Origin: Tubulanus polymorphus
Taxonomy: Eukaryota > Animalia > Nemertea
DNA length: 64,000 bases
Reading direction: 5' to 3'
NCBI RefSeq assembly: GCF_964204645.1
Contig: NC_134034.1
Span: forward strand, 868,001 to 932,000
A program made the position numbers and the translations under genes. Every line of letters begins with the position of its first letter. Within the stretch, counting starts at the first letter, position 1. Of this stretch, positions 38,801 through 60,149 are shown one piece after another. The notes below the pieces were generated by a model. It was not told the origin of the DNA. It was given only the letters and a program-made list of their open reading frames with translations, and ran no database searches.

Positions 38801-41800
38801 AAGATAAAAAAACCCCTCTGAATCGCCCACCCTCTCTCTTCTCTCTCTACAAAGTACTCAACGACACTTGACAATTCCGATGTACAAAACGCTAAGGTTC
38901 TTAGTGAAGTAGGAAGGAGATGAAGAAATTCTCCTAGTTGTGGAAGTGGTTGTTTCACAAAAAGTGCTCAACGACACTTGATGAATTCAGTGTGTCCACC
39001 ATGCGGTACACACTGACACAAAGGTTACCTCAGTGATCTCTCATCATTTCTCATTTCTGTGTGTTTGTAGTTGCCTAAGATGGAGAGTTACGCGTCTGGT
39101 AAAGAAGAGATCAATGTAACTGTAGCTCGTATTTATCTGCTCAGACTCGTCAATTTATTCAGTTTAGTCGCATCGCTTTATCAGAAAGTCAAAGAGGTAT
39201 TAATCAACGAGGCCGCTATCAGGGGGTAGAACTAGAAACCTGCCGCCTTCCTATTAAGGTTCGCCCTACTCGTCAAGATAGAGATTGTTGAAACCTAGCT
39301 GTAGTACCCTATTATTTCCTTACACTTGGATATCGACCACACCACTATATCAGATAGAGTTAGAATCCTGCTGCCCGCTCTATTGAGGTCGCTCTTTTCG
39401 TCATGACAAAGATTGTTAAAACCTATACTCTAGAACCCAACCTTTCCTAACTCTTGGATAACTCTCGATAGGGTATCCGTAGCATAGTAGAATTTCGGTC
39501 TTTTAAGTGAGTGTTCCTGTTTATTGCTGGAATATTTGCCTAACTGCATGGATTTTCGATATATTTCCAGAACAATGCGAGTCAATGTCCGGGAACGGTG
39601 ATTGGTCAAGAGTTTTATAAACTGGTCATACTGGACACAGTGACGCATGTAATCATTAAAACATTCTCTCCATCAGTATTAAACATTGGACCCAGTTTTA
39701 ACCCAGCTTGAGTAGATTCTTAACTCGCAATGTGAGACTGGGTCCTAGACTGGGTTCTGGACTCAACCAGGAGTCAAATTAAACCCATATGATTATATTC
39801 AGTTTTTTCCCATTCAGACTTTAAGTACAGTGTTCATCAATTTCGCCGTTTATTACTGGACGAAGAAAAAGGTCGAATTTCGTATTTCGAAAGAGGTTTT
39901 AGCCGTGGTTTACAAACAAGCTCTTATATGGGTGAGTACTGAGACAAGGGGGTAGGGCATCTACAAACAAGCTCTTACATGGGTGAGTACTGAGACAAGG
40001 GGGCAGGGCATCTACAAACAAGCTCTTATATGGGTGAGTACTGAGACAAGGGGGCAGGGCATCTACAAACAAGCTCTTATATGGATGAGTACTGAGACAA
40101 GGGGGCAGGGTATCTACAAACAAGCTCTTATATGGGTGAGTACTGAGACAAGGGGGCAGGGTATCTACAAACAAGCTCTTATATGGGTGAGTACTGAGAC
40201 TAGGGGGCAGGGTATCTACAAACAAGCTCTTATATGGATGAGTACTGAGACAAGGGGGCAGGGCATCTACAAACAAGCTCTTATATGGGTGAGTACTGAG
40301 ACAAGGGGGCAGGGCATCTACAAACAAGCTCTGATATGGGTGAGTGAGTACTGAGACTAGGGGGCAGGGTATCTACGAACAAGCTCTTATATGGGTGAGC
40401 ACTGAGACAAGGGGGCAGGGCATCCACAAACAAGCTCTTATATGGATGAGTACTGAGACAAGGGGGCAGGGCATCTACAAACAAGCTCTTATATGGATGA
40501 GTACTGAGACAAGGGGGCAGGGCATCTACAAACAAGCTCTTATATGGATGAGTACTGAGACAAGGGGGCAGGGCATCTACAAACAAGCTCTTATATGGAT
40601 GAGTACTGAGACTAGGGGGGGGGGGGGCAGTGTATCTACAAACAAGCTCGTGACTGTGGGTAGGTTTCTGCATGCTGTGAGAAAGAATCAGATGTTGCCG
40701 CTCTGTGTTTCAGATAGGGATGCTGTTCTGTGTTTCAGATAGGGATGCTGTTCTGTGTTTCAGATAGGGATGCTGTTCTGTGTTTCAGATAGGGATGCTG
40801 TTCTGCCCAATTCTACCCTTGATCGGCGCCGTTTCGTTGGTCGTTTTCTTCTACGTTAATTATGCAGTTGTCATGGTAACGTGTCGTCCGCCATTAAAAC
40901 GATGGAACCAATCACGTCACAGCACGTTCTTCTACTATTTGTTATTGATAATGAGCGTGATATTAGTTTTGTTGATGGCCTTCATTCTGGACAGGTAAAT
41001 ATCAGCAAAATATTATCTCTCAGCCAGTGGTCTCTGTAGGTCAGTGGGATAAGGCGTGATGATGTTGCATTCACTATCAGTGCCGCAAGTGGGTTCGAAT
41101 CCTGCTGGCTGTTTAGGGCAACACTCCAAAGGCCGTGGTCCCATCCTGAGATTAAATACACAATCCAAGGGTTCAGTCATTGGGAAACCAAAATCCGAAC
41201 ATCGTAAAGACGACACAAACGAACCAAACCAAACCCACTCAGCCCATCCCATGAAGGGCCATGTCATTGTGGAAACATGTTACATGTTTCAGCTGTATAC
41301 ATTTCCACGGCTTCATGAATTTTGTTTTCTTGTTTCAGTCGCGGTAACTTTCTATATCTGGACACGGCTTTAGAAGGTCCGTTCCGGGGACAGCGCCCCC
41401 TATCGGTATTAACCGATTACATCGAGAGTCAGGCCGCTGTCTGGGTGGCGACACTGGTCGAATGGATGACGTCAGTTTTCGCGTTAATGACCGTTTTCAT
41501 ATTCATGATGTAAGTAACTGTATCGCCACGAGGGGGCGTAGCAGTTAAATCACGACCCCAAGTTCACTGATCGTCAGACCTAGCGGGGTTTAGGGAGGAG
41601 GCCGTCTTTGCTATGGATTAGTTAGCCCTAAATCACCAAGCAATTTGAGGGATTTATGAAGGCAGTCATCTTTTTGCGGAAGGGACTTATGTGAGATGAA
41701 ATCGGTAGTAGGTCATTCGTATGACGTCATAGGAGGATTTTAATCGGCCATGTTTTATTGCGGAGGTTTTGTGTTGTATATTTTGTAGAGTAATAGTCGG

Positions 41801-45379: not shown

Positions 45380-45648
45380 GTCAATAGCCAATTAACATAT
45401 TGGTCACGTGAAGAATAGCCAATTAACATATTGGCCATGTGTAGAGTAGCCAATGACACATTGGTAACGTGAATTAACATATTGGTCACGTGAAGGATAG
45501 CCAATTAACAAATTGGTAACGTGAATTAACATATTGGTCACGTGAAGGATAGCCAATTAACATATCGGTAACGTGAATTAACATATTGGTCACGTGAAGA
45601 ATAGCCAATTAACAAATTGGTAACGTGAATTAACATATTGGTCACGTA
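45380..45648. repeat. 22/31-bp minisatellite whose terminal unit supplies the DUF917 gene stop codon
   Basis: AATTAACATATTGGTCACGTGAAGAATAGCC units; TCA (TGA on -) at 45642. Confidence 0.9.
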
Positions 45649-48640
45649 AAGAAAGCCTGTTTCTCATTGGGGAACGGAGTAGCCGCCTGGACCGTTATAA
45701 TCATGCCGGATTTCTGCAATGAACTGTCCAACATGATACGGCAGTTTTTACTGAACGAATCGCTGACCCCGGTGACGTCACACGTCGTGCCGATCACCGC
45801 CGAATTGATGACGTCATCGTTTTCGTGGTGGTCGTTAGTGTTGGTCGTATCGTCTGCTAGTAACCACGGTTCGTACTGACTGGTGTACACGTGCGCCGAA
45901 TCATGCTCTCTAAACATGCGGTAGATACTCTCGAAACTCTTGATCACTTTATCGGTTTTGATTTTCTCGTCCGCCTGTACGACGATGACGTAGACCTCGA
46001 GCGGATTATCGGCCGTTCTCGGGTCGGGGATCATCGATATGTCTAACGGCTCGTCGACGGCCGGTAAGATACAGATAGAATCGGGCGCCATAAACAGCGG
46101 TTTCTCGCGCGGTTTTCCCGCTAAAATAACCTCGTTTTTATACCACATTTTCAATTTAGAAGTGACGTCATTGATATCGGTGACGGTCAGGTGACCGGTG
46201 TCCTTGACATTGCTCGATTGAAGCACCTTTTCGGTGATGTGTCCGTGAAAGGCGATTTTATTCGGGCGTCCGTGGGCGGTGAGGATATCGCTGATCTGTT
46301 GGGCACGTTCTTCGCCCTGAAACGTGTTCAGGGCTTGTCCTATTTCGAGCGCGACCGAATAAGAGCCGAACACGGGCACGTCACCCATCTGTTCACCCGT
46401 TATCACGTACGTACCGTAACCGATATACGGCGAAAACGGTCCGTTCTCGTCGGAGATCAAGGCCGCGGCCACCTCCTCGACCATTTTCTCGGCGCCGCAC
46501 GGGAAGTCCAGTAAAGTGCTCGGAATACTTTGAAAGTCAGGTCCGGCGTGAGGCGACATGATCGCCGTCGGCGAAACGGAGAACTTGTCGGCGTACGTGA
46601 TTTGATTGACAAGCGGGACAGATCGCCCCGCCCCGTCGCAGTCGACTATAGACACGCCGTTGATGGCGCTGAGATACAGGGCTGTAGCCATATTGACGGC
46701 GCCCAGTTCACCGGTTAGAATGTACGAGAATTGATTAAAACTGGCGAATCGTGGATAGTTTAAAGGGTCCCTCGAACGGAGGTTACACTGTTGTTGCAAA
46801 TAAAGCAATGTGTTGCGGGCCGCGTTGTTCGGCGTGCGGCCGAGATTCTCGTCGTCAGCGCCACCTAGGTTCACGTCGGGAAAACCGTTACATAAGAACT
46901 TCACGCGCATCACGTGTTTGACGATTTCGTAAAAACTCGGTTTCGGCGATCCGGACTCGCTGCCGTTGAGTAAATCGTCCTGACTACGACTCAACGGCGA
47001 CGTCCGTCGCAAACGATCGGGACTCGTGCGCGGGCTATTTCGCGGACTAACTCGCGGACTGGATTTCGGACTGCCCCACGGACTGATTTTACGGGCCGGA
47101 CGTCGGGTATGGCTGACGCGGCGTTCGTTCTGTACTTTAGACGGAGTTCCGACCAGAGCGATCATCGTCATCCACTCGTCATTACCAACACTCTGCGGGG
47201 GTTCGATACACGCGTAATCATCCTCGAATAGATCATCTAGAATTAATCTGTAAATATACACAAATATACAACAGATCAGTATTAGAGTAACCACCAGGTG
47301 TCGCTAGTGTACAGTAGGTCATCAACTACTGCGGCAAAATGATTCCACTTGTGGCAAGTGAGGATCCACCAGGTGTTGCTAGTGTACAGTAGGACATCAA
47401 CTACTGCGGCAAAGTGATTCCACTTGTGGCAAGTGAGGATCCACCAGGTGTCGCTAGTGTGCAGTAGGATATCAATAGAGGATTCCACCTGTATATAGTG
47501 AGGATCCACTAGGTGTCGCTAGCGTATATCGGAACAACAACGCTCGGATTTTTAACGGTCGGATTATTTCTCGGATTCAATTTTTCTCGAAATGCAACGA
47601 ATGAGGAATATGAATCGCTACAGAGCTACGACAAAACCCTTAAAAGATCAATCCTAGTTTAGCTAGAAAGGTGTGGGTGATTTATCTTCCCTGAATCATT
47701 GTCATCACAGGAATCGATAATGATGACAAATTGATTCTATTCGCTACGGTTTCGGTGTTCAGAATTAGAGATTGAAGGCTTACTATTAATCACATTAAAC
47801 TATTAACAGTAGAAGAGCCCCCTCCCCCTCCCTCCATACACTAATCATAATCAGATTATAACCCATTTCATAGAAATTCAAAAGATCAAGAACGTGATTT
47901 ATTCGTTCATCAAGAATCGAAATCGAAAATGTAAAGTACACAATATTTTGGACTCTTTCTAGTATCGCTGAAACGGATATTTCTTATCCAAATTGCCGAA
48001 CAATTTGCTCGATTCAAAATTTAAATGATCTATTTACAAATTCAGCCAATGAAATACGTCGTGGAAAATAGTGAAAGTTTCCATTTCTAATATTCTTGAT
48101 GGAATAGATTAGATTTTTAGTCTTTTAAATTTGTATAGAGTGGATTTCCAATCTTAATTCTCCACGTTTAAGACACGCGTGGCCGCGCTCTCTCGATTAA
48201 GGTATCATCGATTAGCTTAAGATTAATTTAGATATTTTCGAATCTTGATGGATGAATTTAGTTTTTAATCTTTTAAATTCTAATATATCAAGGTTGGTTC
48301 TAATGTTAGTATCACCCCCCTCCCCCACGTCCATGAGTTAGTGTTACCATTCTCCTAAGTATCAAGTCATATCATAACTTAAGATATTTTTGGTTATCGA
48401 AAGAAAAATTTCTTTTTTTTTAATCTTCTAAATTTGTATGAAATGAATTTTTTCACATTAACTTATCAAAAGTGACTTAAAAAGAACCGATATCTATTTA
48501 CTTTCGAGACTGGAAGCTTGAATTGTCGTCAATCGTTAATCTTACCTTGAGAAATGTAAGGGTCCTCCGCCTCCGCAGGCGAGCACTACCGCCCCCTGGA
48601 GGACTAAATCACATTCGTCGCGGTTTAGCTGTCGACTCAT
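45642..48640 (-). CDS. Stand-alone DUF917-family protein (thiohydantoin desulfurase-like), 2 coding exons, ~566 aa
   Basis: Exon 48546-48640 (MSRQLNRDECDLVLQGAVVLACGGGGP) splices in phase to 45642-47247. DUF917 hallmarks: GAxxLxxGGGG, VGTP, GELGAVN, IVDCDGAGRSVP, GSYSVALEIG, FHGHI, DTG, WYKNE, APDSI. Confidence 0.85.
47290..47525. repeat. ~78-bp intronic tandem repeat (about 3 copies)
   Basis: CCACCAGGTGTCGCTAGTGTACAGTAGG...GATTCCACTTGTGGCAAGTGAGGAT repeated. Confidence 0.85.
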
Positions 48641-50463
48641 TGTTCGTCGGCCTGAAAATATAAGAAGAAAATAAATGCATGAATAACAAGTTTTAGATGA
48701 AATACAATCAAGTCTGGACTCTCTCGAGTCCTAGAGTCATTTGTGTAGCGCCCAGCGGGTGTAGAAAGATGCTAGAATCCCTAAATCTATTTTCCTAGGA
48801 GCGGTTTCACTTTGTTACAGTGTGTGCGGTTAAATATCTCAACCACAATTTTACGTTTCTTAATGTCGTTTGTTCGCAACATTAATTGGAGAAAACCGTT
48901 TCATACGCGAAATTCAATTCTCGACGTTGTTTGCGTAATTGCCCTTTCTGCTAGGTTTGGAGCCGCCCTTTAAAACGCCGACACGCCGTCTCTAAAGACG
49001 AGTTAAAACTCTTGGTTGGTTAATGAAAAATGACAAATCCAGTCTCAGTAGTGCGTGTGTGCGTGTGTGCGTGTGGACTTTCACGAGTGAAATGTCGTTA
49101 TTAGTGATTAACTCGATGAACTGATATAAGATAGTGTTTGCGTAACACATGTGGATAATCATCGAATTACATCGAATACTGTCTCCATTCGCGATGTGGT
49201 TTACACATTCAGAAATTAAAATCATACGCGTATACTCAGAAATTGATATCAGATCTACTGCAGTTAAAGGTCACCTATCCACTGTGTGGCGCGCGAGTGT
49301 TACTAAAGAATAGTGTTATGGTTTGGATAAGCTACATTACCATTAGGGACACCTAAATTGTAGTCGCTCCAGAAACTGTTTTGTTAGTTTAGGCATATAG
49401 AACTTACTTGGTCTAAGACTTTTCTCAAATCTAAGCAACAACTAACATGTAACTATAATACATCAACCGATTCGGGATGTCCCGAAACATGTCGTAATAA
49501 AAGGGAACTGGCGACTATGATTGAGTACTCACTTGTGTCCAGATGAAAGTTTCTCCTATAACTAGTCCCAGTTATCACTATACAACCCATTATGAATACG
49601 TTAATTAATGAAATCAGTGGCGCTAATTAAATCCTGGTCAATGACAGTGATGACCTACCCCCTATCTAGACTTATTGTAGCCGAGAATAGCCTCTTCACA
49701 CAGAGCGGTCGTTTTCATTATCGCCCTAAACCGTTCATTATCACACCGCCCGCCGACTGATCTATGACGCGTGTTCTTTTAACCTTTATCAATCGGAACC
49801 GGGCTATCGCTATAAATAAACACCGGTCACGATCCGCCGGGTCGAATGACCAAACCGATATCGATCGATTAGAGAGCGACCGACACGCCACCTAGTAGCC
49901 GCAATCGACAATACACTAGATAAGATCGTACTGTGATACATTTATCGCGAATAATGCCTTAGAGCGTCCATTTCATATGCTATAACGAATTAGTTTTAAT
50001 AATCGAGTTTCTCCATGTTTGGTTACCTTGTCCGTCCAAAACGTTTGAATCGAATTACACGTTTAGTCAATACAAACAAAACTCTGATGACAACTTTTCG
50101 ACACTTTTTAAACGATGACTTTTTGAATGTGAAACGGGTGAAAAAATTGTCAAGAAAATGAAATCAGAAACTTCATTTCACACCGATTAGTTCAGTTAGA
50201 ATAAATAATAAGTAATTTCTGCCCTAAAGTTACAGTTCGATTCGTAAGATTCAGTAAGATCATTCATAAGTATCATCACAAAATATTTCATCTTTCAATT
50301 TATTTTACGTTTAATTTCCTTACATTCTCTACACCTTTCGTATATTCCCTTTTTGTATGAATTTATTAATAAAATAAAAATCATCCAAAAAAAATCTTAA
50401 TATTCTTTTAAAACAATATCAGATGGATGACGATATTTTCCATTAAGATTATGATTTACTTAC

Positions 50464-50595
50464 TGGGAATCACGTAGTCAAACATATCGCCTGATGTATA
50501 AAACTCTCTCTCTTTCTGTGAGCTGTCGTCTGCTGGTGATGTTAGCGTTGTTTATGTTTGGCAGACGATGCGATATTCAGCTGTATTTATACTGG
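50464..50595 (-). promoter_or_regulatory. Candidate TATA promoter and non-coding first exon of the DUF917 gene
   Basis: TATAAATA on - at 50584-50591, GTAAGT donor at 50463, and a downstream acceptor TTTTCAG at ~48652 just before the ATG. Confidence 0.5.
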
Positions 50596-51214
50596 ATATC
50601 GCAGTGTCAGTGATGACGCATGCGCGCTGGGGGAGGAGACAATGCGCGCGTCAATCGCTAATCGATTTTAACCTAGCAACATCAAAACATTATAAACAAC
50701 TCCCCGTCGCTATATTTCACGTGAATTATTGATTTTTAAATATATCGTTTTAGGTCCAGTTTGTATCCGGCGAGTGGGTGAAGTGGAGAGCCTTACGAAT
50801 CGTTTATTGATAGCGGTTTAAAACGTCCTATAAAACCAATACAAGTCCTTTTGGAAAGTTTCGAGACCCCCAATTCATTATATCCATCATGGTTATCATT
50901 CTTATATTATCATTATGATAAATTATAATTATTAGAATTATATATAACCATCATAATTATCATTATAATTATCATGGGGACTTTTTCCGTCTGATCCAAT
51001 AAGAATATCCGTTACCAGCAGGACCGTGTGGTGGGAAAACAATCAAATCAAATCAAATCAAATCAAATCATACGAAATCTACCAATCAAATAAATAAAAG
51101 GGTTTATCCCTATTTTATACCAATCAATCTATAGAAATATTATGCTTTTCAACTTTTTCAAGAGATTTGAAAATTCACTTTCGTTCAACCGATTTTCGAA
51201 CTAACAGTGCGCGG

Positions 51215-51560
51215 GTGGATGACGTCATCGGTGTGAAGAGGGATATCCCGCTTTCACTTGTCGGTATCGATCTATTCTCGAGTATGCGCGGCTGCGACGT
51301 CGAGAGATCTCAGGTACTCTACCTCGGTCCTCTCTAGTTCGGATTACGTGATATAGCGCACGCGCCGACGTTACGGTTAGATCCACTACTCGAGAGCAGA
51401 TCGCGGTCGGATTACGCTCGATGACGTCATCGACGGCGGTGACGTCACGCCACCCGTTGCCGGTGAATTAATCTCGGGCTCGACCACGTGACACGCGTGG
51501 ATCAAAGGATTATCGGTTGGTGGCAATTACTGTCGGATTGGTTAAGTATATAAGCCGGCT
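51215..51560 (+). promoter_or_regulatory. CpG-rich CRE/CCAAT/TATA promoter-like module
   Basis: Perfect TGACGTCA at 51220, 51422 and 51440; CACGTG at ~51485; ATTGG at 51537; TATATAA at 51547. Confidence 0.5.
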
Positions 51561-54500
51561 AGTGACAGTGATAACAGGATTAGCCGGCAGTGTCTGTGGG
51601 ATTCTGATTGAGCCGTTTATGAAGCAGTTGAAGTGTTTGACACTTTCTCAGAAATCCGTCCGAAAATAAACATCAAAATAGTACAAACATTTCGTTCATT
51701 CATACCTCAAAAAACATGTACCGGGTACCGACGCGCTCAGCTAAAATTCATTGAGCTGCCACCCAGGCCTGTGCCACCGAGCTTTTGTGGGCTGAGCAGT
51801 TCTCAAGAATAATGACACTTTTTAATTGCCGAACAATTGCCGAACGGTTGCCCGAATAAATCATTTTAGAATGGATAACTTTTCATTTTTGCCAAAAAAA
51901 TTATGAAAAACTTAACCCAACCTTTTGGTTTTTTGAAGGGGTTAAAATTCAGTTGTTAAGCGCGAGCAGTTTTGATACGTCTCGTGAAACTTGGACAAAA
52001 TCCAAAATGGTCGCTTTACTGGGAACTAGTTTTATAGGGAGAGGCCGTACTATAATATCGACTACGTTCTTTTTTTCGATTTGACCCACTTATCGATTTT
52101 CAATATTACGGACGCTGATGAAATACGCGCCGTAGTTTGGAACCGATCCAAAACCACCTGACAATTTACGACGAGGCCAAACGAATACGGTTATTCGTTT
52201 GCCATCTTGATTTCTGGTTTCGTAGTGAAGTATTTGAAACTGTGTTTTTCTCCGTTGCTTTAGTTTTCATTGAATCAGCAAAACTTGACTCCACGTACCT
52301 TCCGAGACGTTGCCATGACGTCAGCGCCTAATTTGCATTACAAAATCAAGTAGGCGGCGCCACGTTACGGTGCGCGGAGGCCGCACCTCAGCAGTTTATA
52401 AATGAGAACTTAATAAGTTAATTTTAAGATGATATAAGAAATGATTAAAGATCTATTTGTGGAAAGAGTCATTGCGAACAAACTGATGCGTTTTGAAAAT
52501 CGATGAAATCATTATTAAGAGAAATTGCAAATCAAAAACTCGCAAGGATAGGTCGTATGAAACCTGGGTCGTGCCGATTGGAATAAACGATGTATTCACT
52601 GTGTTCGGCCTATTGAACTATCTCCAGTTACGAGCGTTCATCGTATTTCATTCATGAGTCGTCAGTGGCACACAGCTGGTCCTATAGGCTTCCCTAACAC
52701 ACCGCGCCTGCCTGCCAGCTCGCCAGCTTGCGCGCGTGTCTGATGATGTTGTCTAAACAGTAGGGATTGGTTTTAATTGTTTGTTATATATCGATTATGA
52801 AAAGTATGTTCACGCTGTCAGGAAAGTGTGAAAATGATCTATAGCGCGCGTAAGAGATTAAAAATGACGACGGGTTTTATACGACAGCTGACGCCAAAAA
52901 ACGGCATCGTGTCTTCAGACATTTCAGACGACATTTTCTCAGAAATCTCACGATTCTTACTATATTCACACCGATTGAGACCCGACATGCTGTGCCCAGT
53001 AGGAGAAATCTACTGTAATGTCTTATATTTCAACGTTGCGAAAAAAGACTTTTTGAGATCCTTAAATACAGTAAATTTGAGTAGAAATCAATATTTAAGT
53101 TCAGCAATGTTTCTGTTTGAAATAGACCTTTAGTGTCTCACTGATGAGACCGTCCTGCTGTTAATTTTGAAGTAACCAATTTAGCAATAAGACCAAATTT
53201 CTTTAAACTTAGTCGTATAACTAGAAATTGAGGTGAGGTTTGTCCTCATTGATAACAAGAAGTAAGCCACAATTTTGGTTACAAAGTGTTATCGAACGCA
53301 TGAAACTGGACCCGAGCATGACCAGCGTCATACGATCAACAGACCAGACGGACCACCCTGCACGACTGGTCTCAAATTATTGTAATACCAGACGACAACG
53401 AGATGAAGGACCACTGCGCGACTGGTCTGAAATAACTTTTTTAATCTACAGTAACGCGATAGCACTGATATAAATTAATGATTAATCAATATTAATTAAT
53501 TAATTAACGAATGATGAGTATATCGATGACGGCGTCCGGTATCCAGGCGAGCGATGGCTATTTAGCTGTGGACGTTATCCGGTATCCTGGCGAGCGAAGA
53601 CTACATTTAGCCGTGGACGTAAACAATATGCAACGGATTCAGAGATTTTCAGTTTAAAGATGGCGGATGTATCCTTCTTATAGGCTTCGACTGAACGTGA
53701 CGTGTGACGGTTTTAAATATCAGTTCCAGGGTTATAGTTTACGATATACTGATAACGAAGATTACATACAAGTCGTTTTACGCATCTTGGTGTTAAACAC
53801 TGCGTTGAATAATAACTCAAGACTTATTTTCAACTTTCTATATTTCCCATCCAGCTAAATTTTATTATACCCTTATATTACAAACGAACCACATAAAGCG
53901 CTCTGTATAAAAAGTCTCTATTTGATCCCGTGCTGAGTTTACCGTTTATATATATATATATTTATACAACGTTGAGCTGAAAGTTTATTGCGGTTTTTTA
54001 GACGCGTTTTTTGACCGCGAGCCAAATGTGTTACTAAAACAGAGGCGGCTCTTTATAGTAGTTCATCTTAAAGATGAAAGGGATGAAATGTAACTCGACC
54101 CTGCAGCTGTATCCAGCATCCGGATTGCCGTTGAGGTAACCACGTGACCCCACGCGTTTCCGGCTATTTGCATATTTTCGCCTGCGTTTTGTGGTCACAT
54201 AATTTGAATAAAATGATTTTATCGAATATATGATGATGATAACAAAATAGATTGGGATAGAATGTTCCGAATAATGCATGTTTAACAATGCCCACGCAGT
54301 CAGGGTTGGATCTAGGGTCCGATTCAGGAAGGGTTGCATTCCCACAATAGGACACATCCAATTTCAAAAAGGACCCGGTTCGAGAGCTCTTCGCAAAAAC
54401 AATAGCATTTTTTTTTCTCGAAAAACAGACAAACTTATGAATTTGAAATTTTTTAGGCATCAGTTTAATATTTTTCATTTCCCCCGTAAATATTCAGTGG

Positions 54501-54739
54501 GGTAACTTGACATTTTAAGTGGTGCGCGCCCCTACACCTCCCCTTGAATGCGCCTCAATTCCACCCACCCATCAGTTCCACGATATCCATCAGTTCCACA
54601 TATCCACCAGTCCCACATATTTCCCGTGTTGAATGTTTAGATGTTGTTGATTCAGTAATTAGATTAAGATAGCGATAAAACGATGTGAAAACTCTACAGT
54701 CGCGGGTGATGACCTACAAATATTGTTTACCCGTACATA

Positions 54740-54928
<189 letters not shown>

Positions 54929-57900
54929 CCCTTTTATAGTTCGGGAGACACAGGAAATAAATAATTCACGAATTATAGACAAACCCACTTTTTATCTCTC
55001 TTCAATAGAACATCGTTTATCCCACAACAATGTCCAGTAAAATGGTGCAGTCATATAGCTTATATTTTTAAGACCAGTCTAAGCTCATTTTGGTTCTATA
55101 ATTAAACAATCTAAAAACTTAAGACCAGTCTAGGTTTATTTTAGTTCTATAACCAATCTAACAACTGAAGACCAGTCTAAGCTTATTTTGGTTCTATAAA
55201 CAATCTAAAAACTTAAGACCAGTCTAAGCTCATTTTAGTTCTATAACCAATCTAACAACTGAAGACCAGTCCTAACTCGCCTGACCAAATCTAACACCTT
55301 TAGACCAGTCTAAGCTTATTTTAGTTCTATAACCAATCTAACAAATCAAGACATGTCTTGAGATTCAAGAAACCTTTGGATCAATGAATCAAGTCCGATT
55401 TCTTTTTCTAATGAAATCAAATGCGTGAGTAACCCAAGTATCTCGTGTCTGTTAACAGGGCATGAATTCATAGGTATTCACAACAAAGTTCAGTGTTTTA
55501 GATAACAAAAAAATAACTTAATTACCTGCGAGGTCATCAGACTGAATGATAAATCCAGCACGCACACGGCGCACGCAGGCGCACGCCGCGCACAGTTATG
55601 ATAATTGCTTCGATCGCAATTTTACAATCATTATTATCCCGTAACTAATTAGGATAAAAAACAACAAACAGTCAGAGGCGACAATTTTGATTACGAATGA
55701 ATGTCTCTATCTCCTCGCTGCCCTATAACCATTGGTAAGCATTATAAAATCCCTGCACATTAAGAATAAAAAAGATCGTCTGAAATGTTTCCTTGAGCTA
55801 GTGTAGTTCACTTAACGTTCCGATCATAAAATCCTGATATTCATCTCCAGGAATACTAGGTGTTTTATCTCCTAATTAGTCTCTGTGCTCTGAATACACG
55901 TGTACTCCTGAAGATGACCATTAAAACAAAACGTCGAAACATTGCGTAACCTATTAGCTCTTAATGAAACATATCTGACTCAGGTACTTCTCATTCCGAC
56001 TGAGGCTGCAGGTTTTTATCTGATCACCGATTTGTCGGTGGTGTGTCGGTGTCCTGTGAACTATTGATATGATATTGACTCATATTTTACCGGTAACCCG
56101 ATGAGTCGCCTGCGTGTCTGTCCGTGCGGCTGCACCCGTTTCAACCAGCGCCGAGAACCGGAGCCATCCGCCCCTTCGAGCACCGAACGCCCGAGCCGTG
56201 CCGCCCCTTTCCTCTTAACGATTCTTCGGCCTTACTCAGCTCACAAATGATTTCGTAGGCTTTTGAGATACACTTTCATTTTTCGATAAGACACTCATAT
56301 AGCGGTATAGCTTGCCTTATATAGCTCACAATATCGTGCAATTTTGTGATATAGCATACTTAAACATTCTTACACTCTTAGAGGTATTTTGTATCGTGTG
56401 GTTTTATGATGTACTTAAAACATTTTTCAATATTATTTGAGGAGCTCAGATTAGACACACCTATTTATAGTGAGCTGACGGGCGGACCCAGTTCCACTTA
56501 TGAGTCACTAATTTGACCCTACATGTGAAACATTGGAAAAATAAATGGAGCTCAACCGACATCACAGTAGAACTGAAGGCCCTGGACCCAGTTCCACAGT
56601 TATGAGTTAAGACTAGAATTAGGGTAGAAGGATTCAAGATGAATTCATTTTGATTCCAAAGAATCGAATTTAACGATCCACTCAGCGACAGAGTCGTCAA
56701 CTGTGCAGGTGGAACTGGATCCATGGTTCATACTTAAGTCCAAAATTGCTCTTAAATCTAAAGACTGGTCTCAAGTTGTTAGGATTGGCTATAGAACTCG
56801 CGGACCTGGACTGGTTCAACTACGGAGTCGGCCTGTGATTTCTGATCCAATGTTGAATTCCCACCAAGAACTGTGGAAATTGGGTTTGACGTATGTTTAA
56901 GTCTAATGTCATTGGACCCGTATTCACAAAATTCTATATGAATACGGGGTCCGATTACAATACACTGTACAGTTTGAATATCGGGTGTTTCAATATCAGG
57001 AGAATCCACACTATTCTCACATCATCGCTGACGAAAAAAACTACTTCAATTGCAGCCGATATTTACAAGCGGGGCTCTCTCGCCACTTGTTATCAATGGA
57101 CACCATGGAAACTAAATGATTAAACGTTTTCGCCCCGCTCTTCGAAATCCATTATTGTAATAGATATCTAATGGTTATTTGTTTAAAGGTTTCTAGTATC
57201 GGGGAACCATATCGCATCTCCAGCCAAAATAACATTTGGGATTTCGGTAATGAAATGATGCATTTGAGTTTATGTTTTGAAAATCTATATATAGCCCCAA
57301 GGTTCCTTCGTTAAGTTTGAAATGTCAGAAAAATTAAAATTTGACCAGAAGCGATCTAGGACCCGTTTCCACGGTTACGTATCCACATGTTTGAGTAAAC
57401 TCCGAGTTGAGATAAGCTCATTTTCATTACACAGTCAAATTCCAACTCACTGTGGACTGGCCACTTCCCGAAAAATTGGTTAAAGTTAACCAGTGGATAG
57501 TTGACAAGAGTTAACCAGTGGATAGCGGACCAGTGGATATTCATCCACTAGTTATCTTTGCGCGACCTTTGAGCAACTGGCCCCCGGTTTACACCGTTGG
57601 ATATCGATGGTTTTTAAGAGGTGGTGAAGGGCGGTGGCTCTGGTAAAGTGTTTCAGACAACTCTGTTCGCATATCGTATAGCTATCATTATCGATACGAC
57701 TAATTCTGATACATAAACTACGGACCGGAAATGATTTTATAGCCACTTATTTGACAAGGGATTCACAGTAACCAATGGCAGCGCTAAAACGATCAGATTA
57801 TTTATACAACAATGATGACGGTTTGTCACGAACGATTCAAAATGCAGACTGATATATTCTCGGGCCATGTGTCGGTTCCGATACCATTAAAATTGATTAG

Positions 57901-60149
57901 TCCATTAAATTATAAATTAAGTCATTCGATAATATATTGAATATCGATATCGTTTCTAAACGTTCTGAATGGTTATTGTATATGCAGATAGCAATTTAGA
58001 CAGGAAATGTCTGCGTGTGGGTGGTGGCTGCGGGGGTGTCGCCGTTTCTAGCACGAAAGTTCCGCAGTGTCATTAAACAAGGTTAGTTACTTATCTGACC
58101 TCTTAGATACGAACCTCCCGTACACCTGGAGGCCACTTTCGCAACAAAGACGATTAAATATTTTCGATTAATGATAAACTTGAGTTAGAAAATCGATTTT
58201 GGAGTTGCTATCGTTTTGGAGGGGGCTGGAATTTCGCGGATCGGAATTCGTAGCACGAATAGAATGTCAAATCGTGGTCTAGATAATTACAATTAAGATA
58301 AGAAAGCTTTCTAATCTTTCACTTCGTTCATTTTTGTAGATAATTTTCTCCAACATGAAACATAAAGCGCTTACTATATCATGTTTTCTTGGGAATGAAT
58401 TGAATTGATTGGAATAGTTGATGACAGTTTCCTGGTTTGAATATGATTGATATTATAGTTGATAATATTCACATCAGTGATTTATTTATCTAAAACAGGT
58501 GTTTTTTCTCATGTTTAACAGAATCAATCATTAGCCGTATTTGAACCTATATAGTTAATCACAGCTGTCTCCAAATGGTTACTGTTTAGATTCATTAGAA
58601 AGTTAGATTTTATATTTCCTTCGATAACTTTGAAGTCCGCTCTACTGAAGATGAATGACGCAATTGAATACTAAAAATTCACGAAGTTGAAAGTTTGCTG
58701 TTTAACCCTAATTAAACGTTTAGAAAAGAACTATTTCCAACAGTCGAACGGAACAAATCATCATTGGCCTCATCATGATAGAAACAGCTATAACACTGAC
58801 GATCAATATCAGCAGAATTAACATCGTTAGATCAATGCGTTAATTTAGAATTCTATTTAATTCGTTTGTAAAGTGTATTAATAATCGTAATTCAAACGAC
58901 TCGAAAACAGAAACAGAAATATCCGGTATTACATCGATTACATAAGAAACTTTTTAAGTTATCCTGAATTACTCTGTAATCCGCATAAATAATGATTACG
59001 TTTAAGTTCCGTTAAGTTGCAAACTTCAGTTGGTCAAAACCTGTAAAACGTTAACCAGTCGATAGTTAACATCGTAGCAACTAAAACTACATGGTTTCTA
59101 TATATTGAATTTATCCGCCAGTTATCTTGCACAAACTTTTGACCAACAACTGCAACCCTCTTGCTCATCCATCCTTATCAGAAATTTAAAAACTCTTCAT
59201 AACAATAAGAAGATTTAAGCGTTTGCTCACCTTTGAAACCAGTTGAAAAGAAATATCTCGCAGTTTTTTTAAAACAAACAACTCTCAGAAAAATCCGACT
59301 TTGACCGTGCAATGCAGTAATTATTGTCACCTCCGGGTGATGTGTCTGGCTGCATGCAGCAGTAGTAACTATTAATTGTTCGCACTGCAGCCCCGTTTAT
59401 TTATACCGATACACACACGCGTTTATTTTTACCCCAATCGGAAATTCCCTTTATCGTGACTAATCGGCAAGTTCCGGAAAACCGATTGTCGTCTTGACAC
59501 GCGGCGCATGCGCACTAGTACGACGCGTGTAATTGCACTTAATCAAAAAGTTCCATAAATGTATGTATATATGGGATCGGAATGTAGGAGATCGCGGCCT
59601 GAGTGACACAGTACTGACTGACTGCTAGCCTTTGTTTGATAACAACCCGCTCTTTCACCTCCATTGATGACACAGCGATCGCGCGCGCCGACAGCGCTGT
59701 CATCCGCTATTAAAATTCCTCAACGCCATAAAACTATTTGTTTTAAATATTATCGATGATGCGATATTAATACGCTATTGAAGGTACTTAGAACCATTGC
59801 ATAGCACAAGGTGTGGGACATATCGCGGAACACGTGACGTGTGCTAATATTTACTATTTAGACAATCAACGACCTCCGTGTAAAGCGCAATCGGTGGTGA
59901 CAAAACAAAATTCCGAAATTCAAAAACTTTATTGAAGTGATTAACATCGTGGCCGTTTCGGCTTTTGAACTTCTGTGGAGAAATCCTACGAGAAAATTGA
60001 CGTTTAGATTCAATTCTTGCGAGCCGTTTTTAAAAGACTAAGAAAGTAGTGACGTTGAGACTCAATTCTGAGAGCCATTTTCAAAACATGTTTCGAAAAT
60101 GGCTGAATTTGAAATAAACTGTCAAGAACTGTAAAACTGAGTCATAAAA

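Follow-up and report, generated by a model that had tools for sequence, protein, structure and literature searches.

Evidence for an old bacterial transfer behind a stand-alone DUF917 gene of ribbon worms

A stand-alone gene of the DUF917 family lies among the genes of the ribbon worm Tubulanus polymorphus. Where did this gene come from, and what does its product do? The DNA analyzed here, hereafter the window, is a stretch of 64,000 nucleotides (C10:868001-932000 of the genome), and positions refer to it unless another sequence is named. The first question has a well-supported answer, namely that ribbon worms acquired it by gene transfer long ago. The second leads to a group of bacterial relatives that are associated with signal transduction, and probably to a substrate other than an intermediate of ergothioneine breakdown.

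Structure of the gene and its product

The gene corresponds to LOC141911785, which is annotated in RefSeq as "uncharacterized" and whose product (XP_074658936.1, 566 aa) is identical to the spliced product obtained here. The initial annotation had joined a 95-nt exon in phase to a long exon, and both the reading frames and the splice sites agree with this: GTAAG follows directly after 48546, a pyrimidine tract and CAG precede 47247, and the junction codon (AG+A, Arg32) is in frame with the 534-codon exon that ends with the stop TGA at 45642. Moreover, the spliced junction is present in public run X2, where one contig joins 47247 and 48546 exactly at a depth of 205. The same contig extends 126 nt into a non-coding exon 10.6 kb upstream; thus, the gene consists of three exons and two introns (table 1). 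The earlier layout was therefore right about the 95 coding nucleotides, but these belong to a 106-nt internal exon, and a further exon precedes it. Contig depth in run X2 reached 324 over the coding exon versus about 2-5 in the intron, and because the exon depth is far above the intron depth this run, although not recorded as RNA, behaves like RNA; all four public runs come from one study, and their contigs give no expression levels.

The surroundings are clearly metazoan, as had been proposed, with exons of TMC, 7TM GPCR and ligand-gated channel genes nearby in the window. The GC3 of the DUF917 gene (0.64) is within the range of the other open reading frames of the window (0.46-0.68). Three tandem repeats were observed in the same region. 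A 75-bp repeat (2.5 copies, 47291-47475) lies inside intron 2, and its summed contig depth of about 57,000 in run X1 indicates that it is a very abundant genomic repeat. A 52-bp repeat (4.6 copies, 45421-45657) runs over the stop codon and occupies the first part of the 3' UTR, and a third (39899-40742), just upstream of the TMC exon, gives spurious open reading frames on both strands.

Table 1. Positions of gene and protein features in the window
Feature	Position	Strand	Remarks
Exon 1, non-coding	59231..~59358	-	126-nt loose contig end maps from 59233, GT donor next; 5' end undefined
Intron 1, in 5' UTR	48652..59230	-	10,579 nt, GT..AG
Exon 2	48546..48651	-	106 nt: 11 nt UTR and 95 nt coding, ATG at 48640
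Intron 2	47248..48545	-	1298 nt, GT..AG, phase 2, within the Arg32 codon
Exon 3, coding part	45642..47247	-	Residues 32-566 and stop; remainder of PF06032, whole PF20906
Insert of ~100 aa (residues ~70-170), after the G65-x-P67 loop	46833..47135	-	From alignment; partly disordered
Six SPxx repeats, period 4 (S87-S107)	47013..47084	-	Within the insert
Core E212-x-G-x-x-N217 ... D234-x-D236-G-A-G-R240	46623..46709	-	Putative metal/substrate site
N403-E404 and P420-D421, C-terminal domain	46080..46136	-	Conserved residues
C-terminal tail (residues ~497-566)	45645..45854	-	Low-confidence in model; absent from bacterial kin and C3 paralog

The product was predicted earlier to be a complete DUF917 protein, and this was borne out by profile and structure searches. 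The long exon matches PF06032 with 40.4 bits and PF20906 with 62.4 bits, both over the gathering cut-off of 27, and the short exon, which codes for the initial helix together with the GGGG loop (G23-G26), matches PF06032 positions 3-21. All of the motifs named in the initial annotation are present. The structure model (133-row alignment) had a pTM of 0.80 and a pLDDT >90 for 364 residues, and it adopts the two-domain fold of 2o3i, since the sole Foldseek match was CV_3147 (2o3i; E 2e-20, TM 0.82 by target; next match at E 0.27). The residues G23-G26, E212, G214, N217, D234, D236, R240, P243, N403, E404, P420 and D421 are kept in bacteria and do not vary among the nemertean rows; the core residues are 82-100% conserved in each bacterial group, with the exception of N217 (70% in one group). 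The worm protein thus retains the full DUF917 fold and every family-wide conserved residue, and the putative metal and water-activating site appears intact.

Relatives in ribbon worms and bacteria

When 1.84 billion representatives were searched with a profile, four nemertean-type proteins were recovered at E<1e-195, and the next match appeared only at 4e-46. The matches below this gap could be assigned to bacteria from their names or their genomic surroundings (Marinobacter, Mangrovitalea, Longimicrobium, Nitrococcus, Sulfuriferula, Leptolyngbya and others); the 150 matches are mostly without a taxon name, and some of them could be microbial eukaryotes. In an IQ-TREE analysis of 80 rows (LG+C20+F+G4), six nemertean rows formed a clade (100/100), whose stem was long (1.3) and which was sister (100/99) to a 22-row group holding the named bacteria and also some unnamed rows. 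This tree has no external root, and the placement agrees with that in a 189-row FastTree tree. Based on the identity of about 30% to the nearest bacteria and the long stem branch, the donor cannot be named; a search of the JGI metagenomes for a closer donor gave only 25-29% matches, and no viral carrier was found in viral contigs.

The search for close kin recovered one paralog in Tubulanus, two copies in Lineus and three in the animal of JGI sample 3300040954, and none elsewhere, so that the range of the gene, as far as searched, covers nemerteans and this animal; hoplonemertean sequences were not among the matches of these searches. The genome of T. polymorphus contains three DUF917 loci: the window gene on C10, the paralog on C3 and a native hydantoinase fusion on C1. 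The paralog (XP_074645472, 491 aa, C3:10330131-10331697) is 42% identical to the window gene and has the same intron and a shorter insert lacking the Ser-Pro array. Its position in the tree suggests, with a support of 95/71 only, that the duplication took place no later than the split between Tubulanus and Lineus, which we take to be that between Palaeonemertea and Pilidiophora. Lineus longissimus has two stand-alone copies in an independent assembly, and no microsynteny with Tubulanus was seen within the fetched flanks. The three copies of the JGI sample, animal DNA in a metagenome, are on genomic contigs and are 70-88% identical to the Lineus copies. In all seven stand-alone genes, of which the three JGI contigs show the acceptor side only, an intron interrupts the equivalent Arg codon downstream of the GGGG loop. 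Because all seven share it, this intron was gained once, before the duplications and before the Tubulanus-Lineus split.

The coding sequence has been constrained. Between a second sample and the window gene, all eight coding differences are synonymous and in third positions, and a comparison of 325 core codons with the Lineus ortholog gave 98 identical codons, 138 synonymous differences and 89 amino-acid differences. The gene is therefore spliced and under purifying selection; it resides in a host chromosome among host genes, has spliceosomal introns and has been retained in related species. In view of the nemertean-only close kin, the bacterial sister group and the shared intron, the proposal of a domesticated bacteria-to-animal transfer with intron gain at the 5' end held up, and we consider it highly probable that the gene came from bacteria. 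In this scenario, the donated gene would have belonged to a non-canonical DUF917 branch of bacteria that is associated with signalling; after its entry into an ancestor of Tubulanus and Lineus, it would have acquired a single intron close to the 5' end and duplicated afterwards. Since the gene was acquired before Tubulanus and Lineus diverged, with the intron and the duplicates arising later, the acquisition can be used as a dated marker and as a piece of lineage-specific metabolism.

The insert and the tail were overlooked by the initial annotation, and both are largely low-confidence in the model (pLDDT <50 at protein residues 86-131 and 140-148, within the insert). At the position of the insert, bacterial kin mostly have about 10 aa in the alignment. 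The number of SPxx repeats rises to eight in the Lineus ortholog (copy A) and in one JGI copy; there are none in the C3 paralog and Lineus copy B, both of which also lack the tail. Six SPxx were reached in 0 of 100,000 shuffles of the insert. Ser-Pro arrays of period 4 are GSK3 relay sites, as in NFAT, and the array of the worm protein resembles sites of this type. A short motif at the end of the tail, I-T-V-x-A-x-x-x-P-F (residues ~548-557, window 45660-45700), is kept in Lineus and resembles linear docking motifs, being loosely PxIxIT-like.

Bacterial gene neighborhoods and possible function

The non-canonical bacterial DUF917 genes occur in a distinctive setting. Among 24 loci, which include near-duplicates and only seven members of the direct sister group, a PAS-GGDEF-EAL gene is directly downstream in 6, an AAA_16 STAND gene adjoins in 16 (with a kinase or cyclase head in those scanned), a Ser/Thr kinase gene faces the DUF917 gene in 1, and 1 follows a racemase-fold gene. 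Hydantoinase A was found in none of the 24 fetched flanks, whereas canonical DUF917 copies adjoin hydantoinase A, mostly together with transporters. The nearest single bacterial match follows an nSTAND1-WD40 gene, and at several further non-canonical loci genes of the Asp/Glu/hydantoin racemase fold are adjacent or fused. Taken together, the neighbors include STAND proteins (kinase, cyclase, sigma54 or HTH-AAA-TPR), nSTAND1-WD40, TIR-WD40 and PAS-GGDEF-EAL. We regard non-canonical DUF917 with STAND or PAS-GGDEF-EAL as a candidate for an undescribed signalling module. The occurrence of DUF917 with hydantoin racemases has been reported in a preprint (10.1101/2023.09.25.559410), whose authors suggest a hydantoinase-like hydrolysis of the ring. 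We found no paper on the transfer or on the signalling-linked branch in a literature search that left most subscription journals outside.

On balance, we favor the reading that the worm protein is an active, cytosolic and metal-dependent hydrolase of a small hydantoin-like ring, acting on a substrate other than that of the ergothioneine pathway. The acidic cluster E212, D234, D236, E404 and D421 would hold a divalent metal and activate a water molecule, which would attack a small cyclic ureide, such as a hydantoin- or thiohydantoin-like ring, at its C=S or C=O carbon; the metal dependence and the pathway order are taken from general knowledge and from NCBIfam names. Judging by gene order, the most likely task of the bacterial branch is to produce or remove the small molecule that serves the adjacent STAND or PAS-GGDEF-EAL protein as input, and in the worm the enzyme may clear or convert such a compound. 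The Ser-Pro array may bring the enzyme under kinase control. A bolder version, in which the bacterial module (a DUF917 enzyme, sometimes a racemase-fold partner, and an output protein of the STAND or GGDEF-EAL type) relies on a hydantoin-like small molecule as its signal and ribbon worms took its DUF917 part and wired it into kinase signalling through the NFAT-like SPxx array, is conjectural and as a whole decidedly unlikely.

Alternatively, the transferred gene might encode a ligand sensor or regulatory scaffold, which binds a small heterocycle and signals through the phosphorylatable insert and the C-terminal tail. This possibility is unlikely, but it has several observations on its side: signalling genes (STAND, GGDEF-EAL, kinase) adjoin 23 of the 24 bacterial loci, with outputs as varied as kinase, cyclase, AAA-TPR and GGDEF-EAL; the sigma54 and HTH-AAA versions were found on plasmids; and the SPxx array is common to Tubulanus, Lineus and the third animal. 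However, all the family-wide acidic residues are retained, the C3 paralog and Lineus copy B are conserved without array and tail, and no partner gene came along, as far as tested, a racemase-fold partner not being found in the worm genome, whereas AAA_16 matches do occur there. The missing racemase-fold partner also counts against the hydrolase favored above.

A different role had been proposed in the initial annotation, which tentatively assigned the gene to the catabolism of ergothioneine or ovothiol. According to this idea, the protein would be a thiohydantoin desulfurase acting in the breakdown of thio-histidines of the ergothioneine type, and it might complete a route that starts with the worm's own histidase and urocanase or in gut bacteria. 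The only characterized DUF917 activities named in the libraries (NCBIfam names) are indeed thiohydantoin desulfurases, the catalytic-looking residues are intact, and an intron-rich OvoA-like (ovothiol synthase) gene exists in the genome (C1:5706239-5710433, ~180 kb away from the native fusion). Nevertheless, the worm protein scored only 26.2 bits on NF058529, whose cut-off is 440, and did not match NF058532 (cut-off 450). Proteins of the canonical clade reached 62-117 bits on the desulfurase models; thus, even these are not members, and the worm protein is farther still. Ovothiol has its sulfur at C5 and would therefore give no 2-thiohydantoin. The breakdown of ergothioneine starts with ergothionase. 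This enzyme lacks the MIO cofactor (PMC13405746), whereas the single HAL-family locus found in the worm retains the ASG (MIO) motif of an ordinary histidase; its exons (C3:14756377-14799773) extend over 43 kb, the last match being set apart by a gap of 35 kb. Urocanase was likewise represented by one intron-rich locus, and a search for ergothionase and thiourocanate hydratase, in which only the best candidates were scored, gave no extra HAL or urocanase copies. Neither HAL nor urocanase was among the genes called around four bacterial loci. Considering that the bacterial kin adjoin signalling and racemase-fold genes rather than genes of ergothioneine breakdown, the job of the worm gene is probably not ergothioneine breakdown, and the desulfurase role is quite unlikely.

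Alternative origins and comparison with known systems

In place of a transfer, the gene could be an old eukaryotic paralog, or a DUF917 part split off the native hydantoinase fusion, that persisted in nemerteans and was lost or diverged in other lineages. The long branch would fit such a history, eukaryotes do hold DUF917 (fused clusters occur in Ascomycota, and the C1 gene is native), and eukaryotes are sparsely sampled in the tree: it contains no full-length fungal or animal fused proteins, and its vertical eukaryotic copies are two exons of the worm's own C1 gene, entered as separate rows. These two exons, however, nest in the hydantoinase-operon DUF917 clade of Actinobacteria, Rhizobium and Haloferax (100/97), and forcing the nemertean and native rows together was worse by 93.7 log-likelihood units (AU p=3.6e-27), so that the window gene does not share one clade with the native copy and a fission of the native fusion is largely refuted. 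The native gene (C1:5888064-5891876) is also intron-rich, with a Hydantoinase_A exon directly upstream, and reads through the Arg32 position without an intron. In the profile search, moreover, no non-nemertean animal match fell between E 1e-195 and 1e-46. The earlier description of the window gene as unfused was accurate: it has no N-terminal hydantoinase A domain, its upstream exon is non-coding, and PF01968 matches were found on C1 and C3 only. An old paralog or a fission product is very unlikely. Bacterial contamination or mis-assembly, for which only the bacterial-type sequence speaks, has a negligible probability, being refuted by the introns spliced in a public run, the even contig depth of exon and intron in run X1, the animal flanks and the orthologs in the independent Lineus assembly.

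With transfer from bacteria as the preferred origin, the gene joins a known kind, the domesticated bacterial enzymes of invertebrates; new here are the insert and the bacterial context. The analysis also exposes a large uncharacterized branch of DUF917 that is linked to signal transducers of bacteria. The substrate lends itself to direct tests with soluble single-chain proteins, both of the worm and of cultured bacteria such as Mangrovitalea or Nitrococcus.

Compared with the DUF917/S-Me-THD-like family as a whole (PF06032 and PF20906), the worm protein has the same fold and the GGGG, ExG, DxDGxGR, NE and PD motifs, but it is the product of a spliced animal gene, adds the insert of ~100 aa with its SPxx array and the tail of ~70 aa, and has lost the GG of the bacterial GGxDxG motif and the Asn of a late N-x-D motif. 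The only solved relative, CV_3147 of Chromobacterium violaceum (2o3i), is related by sequence at E 1e-10 and shares the DGAGRxVP and APD motifs; with 17% identity in the structural alignment, this structural-genomics protein of unknown function offers no clue to the substrate. The thiohydantoin and S-methyl thiohydantoin desulfurases (NF058529, NF058532) belong to the same family and share the acidic residues, but their gene context is different. The eukaryotic hydantoinase/oxoprolinase-DUF917 fusion, represented by the native C1 copy, has the DUF917 module in the same genome, whereas its many introns, its DGMGRAFPE-type motif and its clustering with the hydantoinase-operon DUF917 of Actinobacteria, Rhizobium and Haloferax are features of its own. 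The signalling-associated bacterial DUF917 of Marinobacter, Mangrovitalea, Nitrococcus, Sulfuriferula, Longimicrobium and Leptolyngbya PCC 7376 is the sister group at ~30% identity; these uncharacterized proteins likewise have no hydantoinase partner, and are encoded next to PAS-GGDEF-EAL or STAND genes, some of them also having an Asp/Glu/hydantoin racemase fold as a fusion or as a neighbor.
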